Sequence record: NC_048016.1
Length of the DNA: 64,000 nt
Direction: 5' to 3' (one strand)
Positions 6,122 to 63,709 of this stretch are shown piece by piece. The translations under genes and the position numbers were made by a program. Below the pieces are notes generated by a model. It ran no database searches and was not told the DNA's origin. It worked only from the letters and a program-made list of their open reading frames with translations. Position 1 is the first letter of the stretch. Each line of letters begins with the position of its first letter.

Positions 6122-6724
6122 ATGCAAGTCATTTTAAACATGGCTCTCGGTGAACAGGCTAACCAAATCAGCGAACTGATGGTCGACCTGCGTAAAGACC
6201 TGAACTTTGAGCTGCACGACATTATCAGTAAATACGAACGCAGTCTGCGCGAGGACACCGACAAAGTGCACCACGTTGTTGATGCTCCGAAGATTGTCGA
6301 TGAGTTAACCGCGCTGATTGTTGACCAAGCCAAGGACGTGTTGCAAAAGACGTTCACCATTGGCATCAACGGTTGGGACACCGTGGATGAGCTGGCCCTG
6401 CGGGTAGAAGAAGCGTTCACGAAGGGGGTAACGGACTTAGAAAGTTACGTGCACCTGAATGCCCACGAAACCTTTGTGGCCTGTGGCAACTCCGGTGAAC
6501 GCACACTGACGTTCCAAATGGAATCGCTCCACGATCTCTTTGGGGCAACCGACACCATGAAGGTGGAAGGCATTGTGATGAAAGCCAAAGAGAAGGTTGG
6601 CATCCTTGCCCGTCAGGAAATGGAAACCCTTCTGAGCAAGCTCCAACTGTACAAACTGACGCCAGAGCAAGTGGATGGTGTTCATGAGATGGGCCGTGGT
6701 GAAATGACCGTTAGTCGTTTCTAA
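6122..6724 (+). CDS. Hypothetical helical protein (tandem-array member)
   Basis: 200 aa, AAGGAG RBS. Confidence 0.8.
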   Translation: MQVILNMALGEQANQISELMVDLRKDLNFELHDIISKYERSLREDTDKVHHVVDAPKIVDELTALIVDQAKDVLQKTFTIGINGWDTVDELALRVEEAFTKGVTDLESYVHLNAHETFVACGNSGERTLTFQMESLHDLFGATDTMKVEGIVMKAKEKVGILARQEMETLLSKLQLYKLTPEQVDGVHEMGRGEMTVSRF

Positions 6725-18348: not shown

Positions 18349-18350
18349 AT

Positions 18351-18375
18351 TTTTACAAGTGAGACCTCTGTTATG
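18351..18375 (+). promoter_or_regulatory. Class 2 phage promoter (TTTTAC-N15-TATG)
   Basis: Exact motif upstream of the thyA operon. Confidence 0.6.
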
Positions 18376-57729: not shown

Positions 57730-59056
57730 AGACCGCAATCGCACGCACTAAGAAATACAAGAGAAGGGCAGTACGCACCGCAGAGAGAGCAGCCGCATCT
57801 CGCAGGTGGGTCTCTTTCTTGGCAAGGGCTTCGATACGCTTACGCAGGGACAGCACGTATTCGTTCGAGGCCTTGGCTGCCTGATAGAGGGCCCGCATCC
57901 GGTTGAGCAGTGCGGCCACGTCGCGAAAGTTAATGCGGTTGGCCACAATCAAATCAAACGAGTGACTGAGCGTGTCCTCCATAATCGCCTCAACCTCTTG
58001 ACGCTTCTTCCCTAGGGGTAAGTCGGCAATGTAGAGTAAAAGCGTTTTAAGGGCGTTAGGCGAAGCCTTAGGCACCATCTCGAGCACCACACGGGCCAAC
58101 TCTTCCTTGTACAGGTTGTTGATGCTGTACGACGCATCGAACAGGTTCTGTTTGGCCGTGTTAAACGCCGTGACCTTATCGCGAATAATCGACTCGCCAT
58201 CCAGCTCCACTCGCGCAGACTGGGTAATCACTCGGCTGTTCTCACGACGGACCCGGTCGAGGACACCGTAGTAGTCTTTGACCGTTTGTTTGGTACGGGT
58301 GTTGAGGTCGGTGATAAAGCGAATCAGCAATCCCGGCTGGTCGAACTTCTTGATGGTTTCCCAGTGTGGGGATTCCTTGGAGCAGAAGTCCTGTGCACGT
58401 TGTTCGATGTGCGCACCCCAGTTACCCAGACGACGGATGTCGAACTTCAGGGACAACTGAGAATAGGTCGCTTCGGCCGCGGGCATGTCCACGGGTTTCG
58501 GGAAGAAGTGGTAGTAGATACTCGAGTAGAACTTAAACTGCAGCAGCTTGACAATCTCGACCGCGGCTTTGTGGAAGTCCTTGTCACCGAACATCGGAAT
58601 CATGCGATGCACCATGTACGCCACCGTCAGGTTCATGGTATCGGATGCCACGTTCCACGTCGGGTCAACGGTTTTGGTGTTGGTGATAAGCTCGGTGAGT
58701 AAGTCTTCATCCACCACGAGCACTTGGTCGAACAGGGCATAACGGTCGGTGTCGAAAAAGCGGATGGTGTGCACGCCAAGCAGGTTAGACCCAAACCACT
58801 CGATATTTCCCTCACGAGAAAAAACACCCGAAACGTAATGCATGATTCGTGTGCAGAGTTGTTTGTTGAACGTGACCTTTTTGAACGCTTCATCAAACGC
58901 TTTGAGGAGGGCAGGATTCTTCAGCGATTCCGTGGCAATTTTCTGCTGGTCGTCGTAGTCGTCATCATCCCAGTGGCGTTGTCCATACGGGACGTGGCTA
59001 CGGTGCCCACCTTCGACATATCCGCCCCGATTAAAATCATATTGTAACTCTGGCAT
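57728..59056 (-). CDS. Conserved jumbo-phage (probably virion) protein
   Basis: 442-aa helical ORF; synteny with SPN3US-like genomes. Confidence 0.65.
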   Translation of the reverse strand: MPELQYDFNRGGYVEGGHRSHVPYGQRHWDDDDYDDQQKIATESLKNPALLKAFDEAFKKVTFNKQLCTRIMHYVSGVFSREGNIEWFGSNLLGVHTIRFFDTDRYALFDQVLVVDEDLLTELITNTKTVDPTWNVASDTMNLTVAYMVHRMIPMFGDKDFHKAAVEIVKLLQFKFYSSIYYHFFPKPVDMPAAEATYSQLSLKFDIRRLGNWGAHIEQRAQDFCSKESPHWETIKKFDQPGLLIRFITDLNTRTKQTVKDYYGVLDRVRRENSRVITQSARVELDGESIIRDKVTAFNTAKQNLFDASYSINNLYKEELARVVLEMVPKASPNALKTLLLYIADLPLGKKRQEVEAIMEDTLSHSFDLIVANRINFRDVAALLNRMRALYQAAKASNEYVLSLRKRIEALAKKETHLRDAAALSAVRTALLLYFLVRAIAV

Positions 59057-59079
59057 AGGGGAACCTCTAACTTTTTACG

Positions 59080-59099
59080 GATAGATATTATAAATGTGA
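59080..59099 (+). promoter_or_regulatory. Class 1 (early-type) phage promoter
   Basis: GATAGATATTAT-aaat-GTGA. Confidence 0.7.
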
Positions 59100-59142
59100 T
59101 AGTATACACCTATAAATCTTTTTAAATCATAAGGAGTTATCA

Positions 59143-60279
59143 ATGTCTGGTGAACTACTGCGCAAGGTCGACTGGTTCGACCAGATGCGAAAACAAGAAA
59201 TAAAACCCGAAGAGCAAGTTAAGCTCTGGATTCAACCTCATGGGTGCCTGTGCGAAATTCGTGAAGTCGCAGGCCTGCCGGTCTTAGTGAACGGCGAGCA
59301 CCACGTACTGAACTCAACCTTTGCACGCACGTTGTTTGATGCGGGCATTGTCGGTCATGTGATCATTCACACAACCGAGAGTATTCCACAAAACACCGCG
59401 AAGTGGTTAACGTGGTGGTTGAGTGGAGATCCAGCAATGGACGATGAGAAGGTCCGTACCATTACGGTTTACACCTTTAGCCGTCGACCGAAAATGGCAT
59501 TGCCGTTTAAAGTCGAAGTGGTGGAACCGATTCTGCTACAAGCCAGTAACGTCAAATCCACCGTTGGGATGCAATCCCGTAACCTTCAGGTTTCGCTCTT
59601 CGTCGTAGAGCGAGCCAACGGGAAGCGGTACAGTCTCGAGCCGCAGCGTTATGTCACCTGCACAATCCTTGCCTGCACACAGCATGGCTATGTCTTGTGC
59701 TCGGACAATAACAACGTGTTCTTGGCTGATAAAATTTCCCGACATGTCCAGGCGCAATTGCAGAACGCAAAGTTACGTACGGATGATTTAGTCGGGACGC
59801 GTGTGAAAGTCCAGTTCACGATGTACACTGATGGTCAACGGCTTTGCAACTACAAGAACCCGATTGTGCATCGAAGTAGTGCCCTCGACGACATGGGTGC
59901 TCTCAGCAACCCGGCATACGATGGCCCGTATCTCTTTAAGCCATCCACACAACCCCGCAGCGCAATGCTCACGTCGACGCGCTGTACCCGTGCACGGATT
60001 ACCCTCGAGAACGAGGTAATTTGTGGCCGTGATGCCGAATCTGGCGCTATCCTATTCACATTCCGCAAGGGAGTAGAACCCGGTGTATATGGGGCGGAAA
60101 TGGGAATCGGTGGTCAGGTCGAACACTGGCGATTTGAATCTCCCTACTCTGTTGACGCATTAGACCCGAATGGTTTTGTGCGTGTGCTCGAACCGTTGAT
60201 TTACTTTGCAACGGGGTACAGCCTTCAGCGTATTGGACTGCACTTCGCCGACCACACAAAGCAGTCTCTCATTGCATAG
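59143..60279 (+). CDS. Hypothetical protein; possible degenerate ATP-dependent ligase fold
   Basis: 378 aa, AAGGAG RBS; segment resembling the ligase OB domain (LVGTRVKVQFTMYTDGQ...KNPIV). Confidence 0.6.
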   Translation: MSGELLRKVDWFDQMRKQEIKPEEQVKLWIQPHGCLCEIREVAGLPVLVNGEHHVLNSTFARTLFDAGIVGHVIIHTTESIPQNTAKWLTWWLSGDPAMDDEKVRTITVYTFSRRPKMALPFKVEVVEPILLQASNVKSTVGMQSRNLQVSLFVVERANGKRYSLEPQRYVTCTILACTQHGYVLCSDNNNVFLADKISRHVQAQLQNAKLRTDDLVGTRVKVQFTMYTDGQRLCNYKNPIVHRSSALDDMGALSNPAYDGPYLFKPSTQPRSAMLTSTRCTRARITLENEVICGRDAESGAILFTFRKGVEPGVYGAEMGIGGQVEHWRFESPYSVDALDPNGFVRVLEPLIYFATGYSLQRIGLHFADHTKQSLIA

Positions 60280-60290
60280 AGGATTTTAAC

Positions 60291-60794
60291 ATGCTAACCG
60301 CAACACCAACGATGAGGCCCGCAGTAAACATCGTCTGCCAAGACCGCAGACTGGTGGAACTTTGCGACCAGTACATCATCACTGCCATTCTCAACCACCA
60401 CCCGCATGTCTATTTCGACGGTCCTCAGCTGCTGGCTGCAGCAGCGGTACTCCGTCGACTCGAGGGTCGTCTGACCATCGTGGAGTTCTGCGACTTCATG
60501 GACAACCAGCCGGACATCATGGCTGGATTAGTTGCGCTGACGCAAGACGGCGTGGGTTCGTTTGACAACGGTATCGGAAACTTCCTGGACTTCAGTTCCG
60601 GCTTTGAGGGTGGCATGATGTTCATCACCAAAGAGCGTTTCGATGCTGTCTGGCAGTTCCTGATGATGCGTGGCGTGAACGTTCCCTACCAGCTGAGTAT
60701 GTTCAGCCATTGGGACATGAACATCATGGGCGAAGCAGGGATTTGGGTCAAACCGATTCAGCTGGCACTGGATGGCAACACCATCCACGCCTAA
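60291..60794 (+). CDS. Hypothetical protein
   Basis: 167 aa, AGAGGA RBS. Confidence 0.75.
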   Translation: MLTATPTMRPAVNIVCQDRRLVELCDQYIITAILNHHPHVYFDGPQLLAAAAVLRRLEGRLTIVEFCDFMDNQPDIMAGLVALTQDGVGSFDNGIGNFLDFSSGFEGGMMFITKERFDAVWQFLMMRGVNVPYQLSMFSHWDMNIMGEAGIWVKPIQLALDGNTIHA

Positions 60795-60806
60795 GATCGT
60801 ATCAGG

Positions 60807-60877
60807 GGTCGGTGTGTCTTTACGAGCACCGACCATCCTTTTCCACCCATAGGGTGGAACTCATTTCTTTTTTTTTT
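60807..60877 (+). terminator. Tandem hairpins with intrinsic terminator
   Basis: GGTCGGTG/CACCGACC then TTCCACCC-ATA-GGGTGGAA and long T tract. Confidence 0.75.
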
Positions 60878-61178
60878 GCCTCGGCCCCTAGTGGGACTAA
60901 GAATTGGTCACTTTTTAACCAACCGTTTGACCCTTTCAAAAAGCTTGCTGAAAAGCATTCTAAGCGTTTACAATCAAACCCGGTACATTCGGGTGGCTTA
61001 AGGGGAGAACGTTTACCACAGGGGCGTACAGTGCGTTTTAACAGGGGTTGGGGACGAAGTTTGCCGGGGGGATTTGGGAATCGCGAAATCGCCGGGGTGC
61101 GAAATCCCGTTTGGCCGACGCCGCCGCGCCGATCAAAAATACACTAGCGCTTGCGCGATTTAGGGGGATTTAAAATGG

Positions 61179-61506
61179 CTTAGCCTTGAGAGACGAAATC
61201 TCTTGAGTCTCTCTGCTAAGTGTTTGTTTTCCTTGGAAATTCTATTTATCTAATTCTAAAAAATACTTATAAATCAATTACTTATTACCTCTTTAAAAAA
61301 TACTTTTAAAAACAACAAGTTACGATCCTAAGTGATCCCTTCTATATACGCGTGCGCGTACGCACGCCATTTCCTACAGGGATCTTTTTGTTTTATATAA
61401 TAAATATTATTTAATTATATTTATATAATTATAATAATAGATCATTATACCGCGCCCCCGCGCGTGCGTGATCTTTATTAAGAGATTTTATTTGGCAAGG
61501 GGTGAT
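61179..61506. other. Putative replication origin / genome-end control region
   Basis: 49-bp A/T-only core (61391-61439), six GATC sites, flanking GC-rich inverted boxes, TAAAAAATACTT twice, imperfect palindrome 61179-61220. Confidence 0.45.
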
Positions 61507-61509
61507 CGC

Positions 61510-62260
61510 GGGGTGAAAACCCCCTGTCGAGTTTTTTACAGGGTTGCGTAGTATTCTATGCAATTGCGATGTTCTGCCAAAACATCCAGAGAGACTTCCG
61601 CACCCAACCGACTGGTCATCGTGGGGTGCTTGCCGTAGGACTTGACCCCAGCCTCTGTCCGAGTTTGGCGGTGGGTGTCACAGCCCACCGAACTTTTCAA
61701 AACGCCTGAGTTATTACCTATGGCAAAACGCATTCGGTTTCACGAGCAATCGGGGAACGTAACCAGACTAGCCAGCCAGCTAGTAATCTTCGACCGGGCA
61801 TCGACCCAGCGAAGGCCCACACTCGGATTCCGGTTCGAGTGGCAGTACCAGTTGCTTGCCCCCTTACGCGGGGGCTCTTTTTCGAATGCCTTCTGACGAG
61901 GACATTGGAAAACGGTGCAACACGACTTCGCCTACGGGCAGAGTTCAGGTTCCTGTCTTACCCACCGTCGCCGTTAAGCTGAGCGGCACGCGGTGGCGGT
62001 TTAGGGTTGCGGTCAATCCGCATTCTGAAATCTTGACGGGTACCGTGGCAGTCTTGGGAGTGAGCGAGGTCGGCGCGCAGATTACGACTGCGTTCGGCAC
62101 CTGCCAGCTGGTTGCACAGCTGCGATGGGTGGCTGGCCTGCTCCCCCAAGATGTGGCCAAGAGCATGGTGTGTCTTCTGAGGGGGAGGGCACCAGTCTGA
62201 AGATGGTCTAGGTTGATCCCCGAAAAGACGTAGCCTACGTCCTGACCAATCTTTTTTTTC
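61510..62260 (+). ncRNA. Large structured non-coding RNA region (possibly two RNAs; 3' part partly group-I-like)
   Basis: No credible ORF; continuous stems with G-U pairs, GAAA and cUACGg tetraloops, and long-range pairings. Confidence 0.5.
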
Positions 62261-62285
62261 TTTAGGCAAAACGTAGTGAGGCGCT

Positions 62286-62795
62286 ATGTTTACCAAAGAG
62301 TATCTGGATTCTCTACCAAAGAGAATTCCCATTGAAGAGCGGTTAGCTTCGAAAACCAAGGTTACAGAATCTGGTTGTCATGAGTATGACGGCGTGAAGG
62401 ACCGATGTGGGTACGGCCGATTTAAAATTGGCAAGCACTCACTCGGTGCGCACAAGGTCAGTTATTTGACCCGCGTTGGTGATTACGACCAGAATCTCGA
62501 GTTGATGCACAGTTGCGATAATCCCGCCTGTATCAACGTCGACCATCTCACACCTGCTACTCACCAAGAGAACATGCAGGATTGTGTCGATAAGGGACGC
62601 CACACCTCCCAGCATCTTGACTCGCCGAGACAAGCAGCAATCGAATCAGGGATGGAGTTGTATTACGGCAGTGTCTGTGAGATTCACGGCTATGACCTTC
62701 GCTCCGTTAAGAATGGGGCCTGTGTCTTTTGTCGCGATGATTACAATGCCAAGAAACGAGAGCAGCGTAGAGTGGCTCGTGAGAGTGCCGCCTAG
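62286..62795 (+). CDS. HNH homing endonuclease with C-terminal Cys/His zinc-binding motif
   Basis: GYGRF...AHKVSY...LMHSCDNPACINVDHL...HQENMQD; CEIH...CVFC; GAGG RBS. Confidence 0.9.
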   Translation: MFTKEYLDSLPKRIPIEERLASKTKVTESGCHEYDGVKDRCGYGRFKIGKHSLGAHKVSYLTRVGDYDQNLELMHSCDNPACINVDHLTPATHQENMQDCVDKGRHTSQHLDSPRQAAIESGMELYYGSVCEIHGYDLRSVKNGACVFCRDDYNAKKREQRRVARESAA

Positions 62796-63681: not shown

Positions 63682-63684
63682 TCT

Positions 63685-63709
63685 TTTTACAGACAGTCGC
63701 TGAGATATG
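63685..63709 (+). promoter_or_regulatory. Class 2 phage promoter (TTTTAC-N15-TATG)
   Basis: Exact motif. Confidence 0.6.

Follow-up and report, generated by a model that had tools for sequence, protein, structure and literature searches.

An intergenic element at about 61240–61510 of the DNA analysed (a window of 64,000 bp) is presented here as the strongest candidate to date for the origin at which SPN3US-like nucleus-forming phages start replication. From its sequence, the chance that it serves as the origin, or as the DNA-unwinding element of the origin, of Erwinia phage Wellington and other SPN3US-like chimalliviruses is judged to be real, if somewhat short of even. The element is unique, strongly constrained and apparently untranscribed; the constraint on its core is physical (a potential for melting, cruciforms and Z-DNA) and that on its flanks is sequence-specific. 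The initial annotation had assumed a special cis-acting DNA element, possibly Dam-sensitive, and this is borne out by an element that is unique in the genome, found across genera, apparently untranscribed and the easiest to melt, and by the phage's own Dam-family methylase. The further step to a replication origin stood as far as a cis-acting, unique, conserved and easiest-melting element is concerned, but not as regards membership in the oriC type.

The window is identical to positions 180951–244950, i.e. the last 64 kb, of the genome of Wellington (NC_048016, 244,950 bp, Wellingtonvirus), an SPN3US-like jumbo phage infecting Erwinia amylovora. The element lies inside about 1.5 kb without convincing genes (60795–62285), which is preceded by an early two-gene operon (gp288 and gp289) and followed by an HNH endonuclease gene and more + strand genes; the large terminase gene is found about 4 kb upstream of the element in Wellington and in all relatives. 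No tRNA was detected in the window with ARAGORN, and no known RNA family at the element when the window was searched against Rfam; the sole Rfam match in the window was a sub-threshold int-alpA at 62201–62266, inside the HNH insertion. The features of the described region, which includes the promoter on the right (61240–61560), and of its left boundary are given in Table 1. The stem of the left hairpin is kept despite base changes in the alignment with pEa_SNUABM_11, and this hairpin probably acts as a terminator.

Table 1. Features of the candidate element and its borders (positions in the 64,000-bp window).
Feature	Position	Strand	Remarks
Terminator-like hairpin with T-rich tail, left boundary of the element	61176–61232	+	inverted repeat, arms 61179–61191 and 61208–61220
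A/T-rich left arm with direct repeat TAAAAAATACTT and one IHF-core match	61240–61322		repeats at 61257 and 61294; IHF core at 61272
Two GATC sites, the second in GTGATC	61324–61337		sites at 61324 and 61334
Perfectly alternating pyrimidine-purine tract, Z-DNA-prone GC block	61343–61367		25 bp
Conserved left box CCATTTCCTACAGGGATCTTTT with GATC at the core border	61367–61390		GATC at 61381; kept across genera
A/T-only core, candidate unwinding/cruciform core	61391–61439		49 bp
Right border GATC and right GC block with short alternating purine/pyrimidine runs	61440–61469		GATC at 61440
Conserved right box GCGTGATCTTTATTAAGAGAT with GATC	61466–61486		GATC at 61470; single-copy
Third GTGATC, then terminator-like hairpin	61502–61537	+	GATC at 61504; hairpin 61508–61527; T-run overlaps T-tract of promoter
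Phage promoter TTTTTACA-N16-TATG, rightward, away from core	61533–61560	+	predicted start G at 61560

The pure A/T run of the core was confirmed with exactly the coordinates first reported for it. It is the longest A/T-only run in the genome (runner-up, 20 bp; chance expectation about 1e-10) and lies in a quasi-palindrome that spans from the GATC at 61381 to the GATC at 61440. When duplex stability was calculated from nearest-neighbour energies, no 50-bp stretch of the genome was less stable than the core (7.4 sd off the mean), the element held the genome-wide stability minimum at scales of 50, 100 and 200 bp (the 200-bp minimum being 61239–61438), and the A/T-rich left arm (61237–61336) ranked second among the 50-bp stretches; lowest helical stability in the replicon, a generic property of origins, is found here. 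As single-stranded DNA, the core folds better than dinucleotide shuffles (z −3.2 in Wellington; z −2.1 to −3.9 for the cores of seven lineages including Wellington), and the GATC-bearing ends pair with each other in three of the seven folded cores. Neither the sequence nor the length of the core (about 49–110 bp) is constant across genera; A/T content and self-complementarity alone are kept, which fits an unwinding element rather than coding or promoter sequence.

Six GATC sites within 183 bp had been noted, and all were found, the last of them at 61504, one base off the position first given (61503). The expectation of less than one such site by chance also held: 0.24 are expected in 183 bp from the genome-wide count, a low value because GATC is depleted throughout the genome (324 sites vs about 950–1170 expected from composition, i.e. 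about 3-fold). The Poisson probability of at least six sites was 2e-7 per stretch of this size and about 3e-4 after correction for the number of such stretches, and the cluster is the densest of the whole genome. Three of the sites are GTGATC, in one orientation within 175 bp. In each lineage, 5–7 GATC were counted per 320–380 bp vs about 1–2 per kb in the flanks. A Dam-family methylase gene is present in Wellington (genome positions 105678–106421; PF02086, E = 9.5e-61; TIGR00571, 242 bits vs a cut-off of 115). Among five relatives searched, Dam was found in SPN3US, Huxley and Vibrio phage pVa-21, all of which have GATC clusters in the gap, and was not found in CR5 or Phobos (Derbicusvirus). 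In CR5 and Phobos, the syntenic position is occupied by an imperfect, A/T-rich palindrome (about 95 bp) that has a single GATC and short direct repeats, e.g. TTAGATAGATAA and AATGAATGT. Since the Derbicusviruses keep the A/T palindrome without the GATC cluster, the palindromic A/T core is the widely conserved property; in the sequences compared, GATC boxes co-occur with a phage dam gene, which is in effect one phylogenetic contrast.

Flanking sequences were analysed for repeats, alternating tracts and copy number. The direct repeat reported in the left arm was found at both positions, with 17 nt matching at 94%; the IHF core occurs 12 times genome-wide and once in the element, and other genera carry the related motif TTTAAAAA..TTTTTAAAA..ACTTA in the left-arm position. 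The alternating tract is the longest of the genome (runner-up, 18 bp; 0.015 of such length expected), and three genome-wide extremes (in the length of an A/T run, in GATC density and in the length of an alternating purine/pyrimidine tract) fall within 183 bp. Tracts of 21–23 bp were found in the equivalent position in Seoulvirus, Machinavirus and phiEaH2-like phages. In the GC part of the tract the differences between lineages are transitions only, with alternation preserved, a pattern that is suggestive only as a sign that alternation is kept. The inverted GC pair described around the core exists as an 8-bp match (ACGCACGC at 61360, GCGTGCGT at 61462), but GCGTGCG is also present as a direct copy at 61350; inverted and direct matches are both what is expected of alternating purine/pyrimidine blocks. 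The left box was single-copy in the genome with 5 mismatches allowed, and both conserved boxes and the left-arm motifs were single-copy even at 4–7 mismatches. Classical iterons were not found in the Wellington element; the candidates there for conserved protein-binding repeats beside the unwinding element, a feature by which origins are recognized, are the two single-copy boxes and the three GTGATC.

A check for conservation in relatives, proposed with the initial annotation, gave a shared, syntenic architecture in several genera. Distant blastn of the 1.5-kb gap returned 32 phage records, in which only the element itself aligned beyond the Wellington group, and a search with the right-box pattern GCGTGATCNTTATTANNAGAT led to eight IMG/VR contigs; the pattern was invariant in these contigs and in the GenBank relatives. 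The architecture was found downstream of gp288-gp289 homologues in Seoulvirus (SPN3US, SPFM4, MET_P1), Machinavirus (Huxley, Caitlin), Wellingtonvirus (Wellington, Kwan, pEa_SNUABM_11 and two metagenomic contigs), phiEaH2-like phages and contigs, and the IMG/VR contigs. From left to right, the shared order is TTTAAAAA..TTTTTAAAA..ACTTA, 1–3 GATC, a purine/pyrimidine GC tract of 21–25 bp, the box CCATTTCCTACAGGATCTTTT, an A/T core of about 49–110 bp, a second GC block, the box GCGTGATCCTTATTAAGAGATC, a spacer of about 45 bp and TTTTTTACA...TATG. Sequence is kept in the flanking boxes, and in the core A/T content and quasi-palindromic character are kept. Between Wellington and pEa_SNUABM_11, identity was 91.8% over 61336–61486, compared with 73.6% for gp288, 82.7% for gp289, 82.9% for gp287 and 68.4% for the left spacer; the least conserved piece was the spacer between right box and promoter (48%). 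Vibrio phage pVa-21 was rejected as a member, its syntenic 1.5-kb gap having an A/T-rich patch and GATC clusters without demonstrable homology.

The rightward promoter lies about 120 bp to the right of the element. Ten copies of the pattern TTTTTACA-N12-16-TATG were counted genome-wide, nine of them on the gene strand, and in a looser scan with TTTAC[AT] (14 matches) most intergenic sites had a ribosome binding site and a start codon 20–35 nt downstream. The Wellington TTTTTACA...TATG promoter fits the late motif of phiKZ, T(-3)ATG(+1), and the A/T-rich element near -24 of phiKZ middle promoters (review PMC7598289). The copy at 61533–61560 is 96% identical in pEa_SNUABM_11 and fires into a structured non-coding RNA (ncRNA) with its own terminator at 61858–61875; compensatory changes in this downstream ncRNA and in a second conserved flanking RNA were seen in the alignment. 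In a seed metatranscriptome with a close relative, contigs covered 58876–60760 and then started again from 61570, with no contig between 60760 and 61570 among the assembled contigs of this one library; a library of another sample, probably DNA, gave a contig over 59828–61330. The element is apparently untranscribed, the bracketing terminator-like hairpins (61179–61232 and 61508–61537) and the contig gap being supporting evidence only. An early consensus, in which GTGA comes after the core AGATAGATATTAT, was derived for Wellington from about 25 sites that are without exception on the + strand, and a position-weight matrix was built from 15 sites; an early (virion RNAP) promoter in the element was rejected with scores of 6–11 vs 18–45 at the approximately 25 genomic sites. 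A host sigma-70 promoter on the minus strand directed toward the core (61580–61553, 10/12 matches) was rejected as not conserved in pEa_SNUABM_11, and by inference from phiKZ biology the host RNAP is not expected to act on these phages.

For gp288 and gp289, no match was found in Pfam, sequence comparison with solved structures gave none, and the Atlas yielded none that was usable. The structure of gp288 was modelled with 28 homologues (pLDDT 91.9, pTM 0.83), and residues 1–250 of the model matched ATP-dependent DNA ligases (T4 ligase, Z 11.9; best 50 matches all ligases). On the basis of this model, gp288 is predicted to have an ATP-dependent DNA-ligase fold, with putative ligase activity; a KxD motif at residues 8–10 is present in most homologues but not invariant. 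As a possible initiator, gp288 was rejected, the modelled fold being that of a DNA ligase and not of an initiator. An early promoter precedes gp288 (genome position 240032), and the DNA-ligase fold in the adjoining early operon puts the element in a DNA-metabolism neighbourhood; the early DNA-metabolism gene next door gives mild support to a replication context. Neither a phage-encoded DnaA (Bac_DnaA_C domain), SeqA or MutH nor any recognizable initiator was found in Wellington.

The element was compared with known origins. The resemblance to the oriC 13-mers that had been pointed out is visible, but it is statistically marginal, and other genera do not share the T-rich part of the left match. 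The best local alignment to MG1655 oriC was the R 13-mer, at the right box (15/17 identical, one gap), and scores as good were reached by 17/300 dinucleotide shuffles for Wellington, 9/300 for SPFM4 and 34/300 for Huxley (p about 0.03–0.11). With at most 1 mismatch, GATCTnTTnTTTT had three genome matches, two of them at the core borders in inverted orientation. The likeness is treated as convergence on 'GATC plus A/T' and not as homology. DnaA boxes (TTWTNCACA) had 19 matches in the genome and none in 61150–61650; a DnaA-dependent oriC-type origin by membership was rejected on the missing DnaA box, the lack of a phage DnaA or SeqA and the marginal 13-mer likeness. Like E. coli oriC, the element has an A/T-rich, easily melted segment, GATC-initiated T-rich borders with a marginal likeness to the 13-mers, a dense GATC cluster and a neighbouring promoter that fires outward (gidA/mnmG at oriC, TTTTTACA...TATG here); gidA stands beside the oriC 13-mers in the geometry that is proposed for the Wellington promoter and core. 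Unlike oriC, the core is A/T-only, palindromic, 49–110 bp long across lineages and without DnaA boxes, and is flanked by alternating purine/pyrimidine GC tracts that oriC lacks. In herpes simplex virus, oriS and oriL have an A/T-rich palindrome at the centre with inverted initiator boxes on either side and lie between transcription units. By analogy, the central A/T-only quasi-palindrome, the conserved boxes and the intergenic position of the Wellington element may be likened to them, in a virus that likewise would replicate in a compartment with its own machinery; no sequence relation is known, the Wellington boxes are not clean inverted copies, nothing like the GATC/Dam sites and Z-prone tracts is known from herpesviruses, and no UL9-like initiator was identified for Wellington. 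As in T4 oriF/oriG and the T7 primary origin, a promoter of a phage RNAP adjoins an A/T-rich unwinding element, and the phage is lytic and uses polymerases of its own; in Wellington, however, the promoter is placed on the downstream side of the core and directed outward, whereas the T4 and T7 RNA enters the unwinding element. Scans for early and TTTTTACA...TATG promoters found none reading into the core, nor was a conserved minus-strand site found; a transcription-primed origin of the T4/T7 type was rejected, with no promoter directed into the unwinding element and no RNA contig over it. By membership, the element belongs to none of oriC, P1 pac and the T4/T7 origins; its proposed mode of action most resembles that of an oriC-type unwinding region, and its layout, by analogy, most resembles the A/T-palindrome origins of herpesviruses.

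If the element is an origin, negatively supercoiled phage DNA would melt or extrude first at the A/T-only quasi-palindromic core, the boxes CCATTTCCTACAGGATCTTTT and GCGTGATCCTTATTAAGAGAT would be binding sites of a putative phage initiator, and the alternating GC blocks would clamp the bubble and absorb or release superhelical energy. Phage Dam would methylate the GATCs at the core borders and in the boxes, with the methylation state separating newly replicated from mature DNA, and the outward promoter of non-virion-RNAP type would supply negative supercoils behind the polymerase. The full proposal, namely the first identifiable origin of a nucleus-forming (chimalli-type) jumbo phage with a new architecture made up of an A/T-only cruciform-prone core, Z-prone clamps, gating by phage Dam, supercoiling from an outward non-virion-RNAP promoter whose product is a conserved structured RNA, and an initiator on two boxes, is considered somewhat unlikely to hold in all its parts. 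Several observations argue against an origin: the sole recognizable promoter points away from the core, unlike in T4 oriF/oriG and T7, there is no recognizable initiator, iteron or DnaA box, and the cumulative GC-skew curve of the whole genome, a check that had been suggested, has no turning point at the element. GC skew is uninformative here because the cumulative curve follows gene orientation. In addition, replication in such phages may be mainly recombination-dependent.

A purely regulatory role fits the conservation equally well, as all features are linked to the ncRNA promoter 120 bp off in all lineages. On this reading, held to be unlikely, the element is the control region of that promoter: GATC cluster, core and Z-prone tracts would form a Dam- and/or supercoil-responsive switch that times or boosts transcription, and may in addition shield the promoter from the early operon upstream. 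Parallels are known: a GATC cluster lies upstream of the mom promoter of phage Mu, which is controlled by Dam methylation, and ilvPG has an upstream destabilized region. As in the mom region, the Wellington cluster is upstream of a late-type phage promoter; unlike there, the phage has its own Dam, the GATC sites surround an A/T palindrome over a span of 180 bp and the promoter drives a non-coding RNA. Element and promoter are linked in every lineage examined (95–170 bp apart), the promoter is highly conserved, the downstream ncRNA is present in the RNA library, the terminator-like hairpins on both sides would suit an insulator, and Dam is at hand. However, the other nine TTTTTACA...TATG sites have no such upstream element and the boxes are single-copy, the conserved parts, at -75 to -240, are rather distant to contact the promoter directly, the spacer between right box and promoter is the least conserved part, and an A/T-only palindrome of 49–110 bp with Z-prone clamps exceeds known promoter needs. 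It is improbable that the element is another kind of structural site, such as a topoisomerase or gyrase site, a hotspot of recombination or branch resolution, or a tether of the genome in the phage nucleus. The cruciform-, Z-DNA- and melting-prone features would all answer to superhelical stress, and breaks in three independent assemblies show a strong physical peculiarity, but the sequence-conserved boxes argue for a dedicated binding protein and not for a purely topological site.

Packaging was the other function suggested in the initial annotation. Terminase would then recognize the boxes that contain GATC, with cleavage inside the A/T core or close to it, gated by Dam methylation as in phage P1, whose Dam-regulated pac site has 4+3 TGATCA/G hexamers round a central cleavage region. 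Wellington shares with P1 a phage-encoded Dam and a central segment (about 50–100 bp in the comparison with P1, 50–110 bp across lineages) that has GATC clusters to its left and right; the element is also single-copy, the three GTGATC share one orientation, and the terminase gene is near. Against this, a single P1-type hexamer (61503) is present and the three GTGATC take the place of the 4+3 array, the element is intergenic and not within the terminase gene, and there is no sign of DNA ends at it: records that begin inside the element reflect assembly breaks, and the source assembly is one contig that runs straight through the element and across the record end. Position 1 of the Wellington record was chosen by alignment, with headful packaging inferred from terminase homology only (PMC6256631), and PhageTerm found no termini in a phiKZ-like relative at about 7,900x coverage (PMC11877940). 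The pac reading came out weaker from these results and is regarded as quite improbable.

The statement that no mapped origin is known for this phage group agrees with the searchable literature, in which none was found: nothing relevant to an origin or pac site of SPN3US-like or chimalli-type phages was retrieved, and a 2025 review of the biology of nucleus-forming jumbo phages mentions no origin. For the start of DNA replication inside the protein shell of these phages, the candidate origin offers a precise cross-genus target of about 270 bp. If it is an origin, its initiator protein could be sought, phage Dam and the genome-wide depletion of GATC would have a possible functional explanation, and a part would be available for replicating vectors or engineered genomes of this phage family, including phages for biocontrol of fire blight. 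If it is a control region or a pac site instead, no other non-coding DNA in these genomes is under such strong constraint.

Record ends at the element were inspected in the deposited sequences. SPN3US, SPFM2 and Proteus phage 7 all have assembly breaks in or beside it, and the notion that a record start marks a terminus was rejected. The two ends of the SPFM2 record overlap by 17 nt at a palindrome, about 35 nt of the core are missing from the record of Proteus phage 7, and about 57 nt are missing from that of SPN3US relative to SPFM4. Short-read assemblies break at the element, and a few dozen bases of it are missing from at least two 'complete' GenBank records (SPN3US and Proteus phage 7).

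Assemblies are broken by the candidate origin. Both ends of the GenBank 'complete genome' records of SPN3US (stretches L003/L019) and Proteus phage 7 (L007/L016) fall inside the element, where, relative to SPFM4, ~57 nt and ~35 nt are missing, respectively; in SPFM2 (L017/L018) the start and end of the record share a 17-nt overlap, located at the core palindrome. The A/T-rich imperfect palindrome found at the syntenic place in the Derbicusvirus phages CR5 (6130-6340 of stretch L022) and Phobos (6140-6350 of L023) is a different one, ~95 bp long. It carries short direct repeats (TTAGATAGATAA, AATGAATGT and AAGGGGGGAT, two copies each), contains GATC just once and is followed by an early-type promoter. 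In Wellington, the left A/T arm matches the IHF core consensus WATCAANNNNTTR perfectly at 61272-61284, one of 12 such matches in the genome; this match is identical in pEa_SNUABM_11 and is not conserved in other genera.

GATC is ~3-fold depleted in the Wellington genome (324 sites), which also encodes a Dam-family adenine methylase (see table). Among the relatives searched, Dam was also found in SPN3US, Huxley and pVa-21, and not in CR5 or Phobos.

Features in and around the candidate origin (window coordinates unless stated)
Feature	Position	Strand	Remark
Dam-family adenine methylase gene	genome 105678-106421 (stretch L020)		outside the window
Early promoter	59082 (genome 240032)	+	match to Wellington early consensus
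gp288	59143-60279	+	annotated as hypothetical protein
TTTTTACA-N12-16-TATG promoter	61533-61560
TTTTTACA-N12-16-TATG promoter	63684-63709
TTTTTACA-N12-16-TATG promoter	18350-18375
gp290	60812-61147	+	annotated small gene
gp291	61536-61733	-	annotated small gene
gp292	61958-62269	-	annotated small gene
First conserved structured RNA	61560-61882		downstream of TATG promoter
Second conserved structured RNA	61883-62194		downstream of TATG promoter
HNH endonuclease gene	62286-62795		within insertion between 62194 and 62828

Two promoter classes were defined over the whole Wellington genome. The early consensus consists of an A/T-rich lead, AGATAGATATTATC, 3-4 nt and GTGA, and its ~25 sites all lie on the + strand. 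The second class, TTTTTACA-N12-16-TATG, resembles the late TATG motif of phiKZ; its T-run is often shared with the terminator upstream, and at most intergenic sites a ribosome-binding site and start codon follow 20-35 nt 3' of the promoter.

When Wellington was aligned with pEa_SNUABM_11 and two IMG/VR contigs, compensatory changes were seen across the region of the two structured RNAs. The contigs of an RNA library span 61570-61851 and 61954-62194, the 3' end of the first RNA is a GC hairpin with a T-run (61858-61875), and no Rfam family matched either RNA. The annotated gp290, gp291 and gp292 are, on sequence comparison, probably not genes: an alignment of their region to pEa_SNUABM_11 contains indels whose lengths are not divisible by three, the pEa_SNUABM_11 record has nothing annotated across it, and the conserved ncRNAs are antisense to gp291 and gp292.

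A mobile insertion, made up of the HNH gene and its flanks, interrupts the conserved ncRNA region, because both are absent from two relatives' contigs, in which the positions bounding the insertion are joined with 20 other letters between them. Inside the insertion, 62201-62266 gave a sub-threshold match to Rfam int-alpA (31 bits versus 35.8).

For gp288, a confident AlphaFold model was obtained (pLDDT 91.9), in which residues 1-250 are predicted to adopt the core fold of an ATP-dependent DNA ligase (Z 11.9 to T4 DNA ligase); the C-terminal ~130 residues fall outside this match, and residues 8-10 form a KxD motif that is common, though not invariant, in the family.
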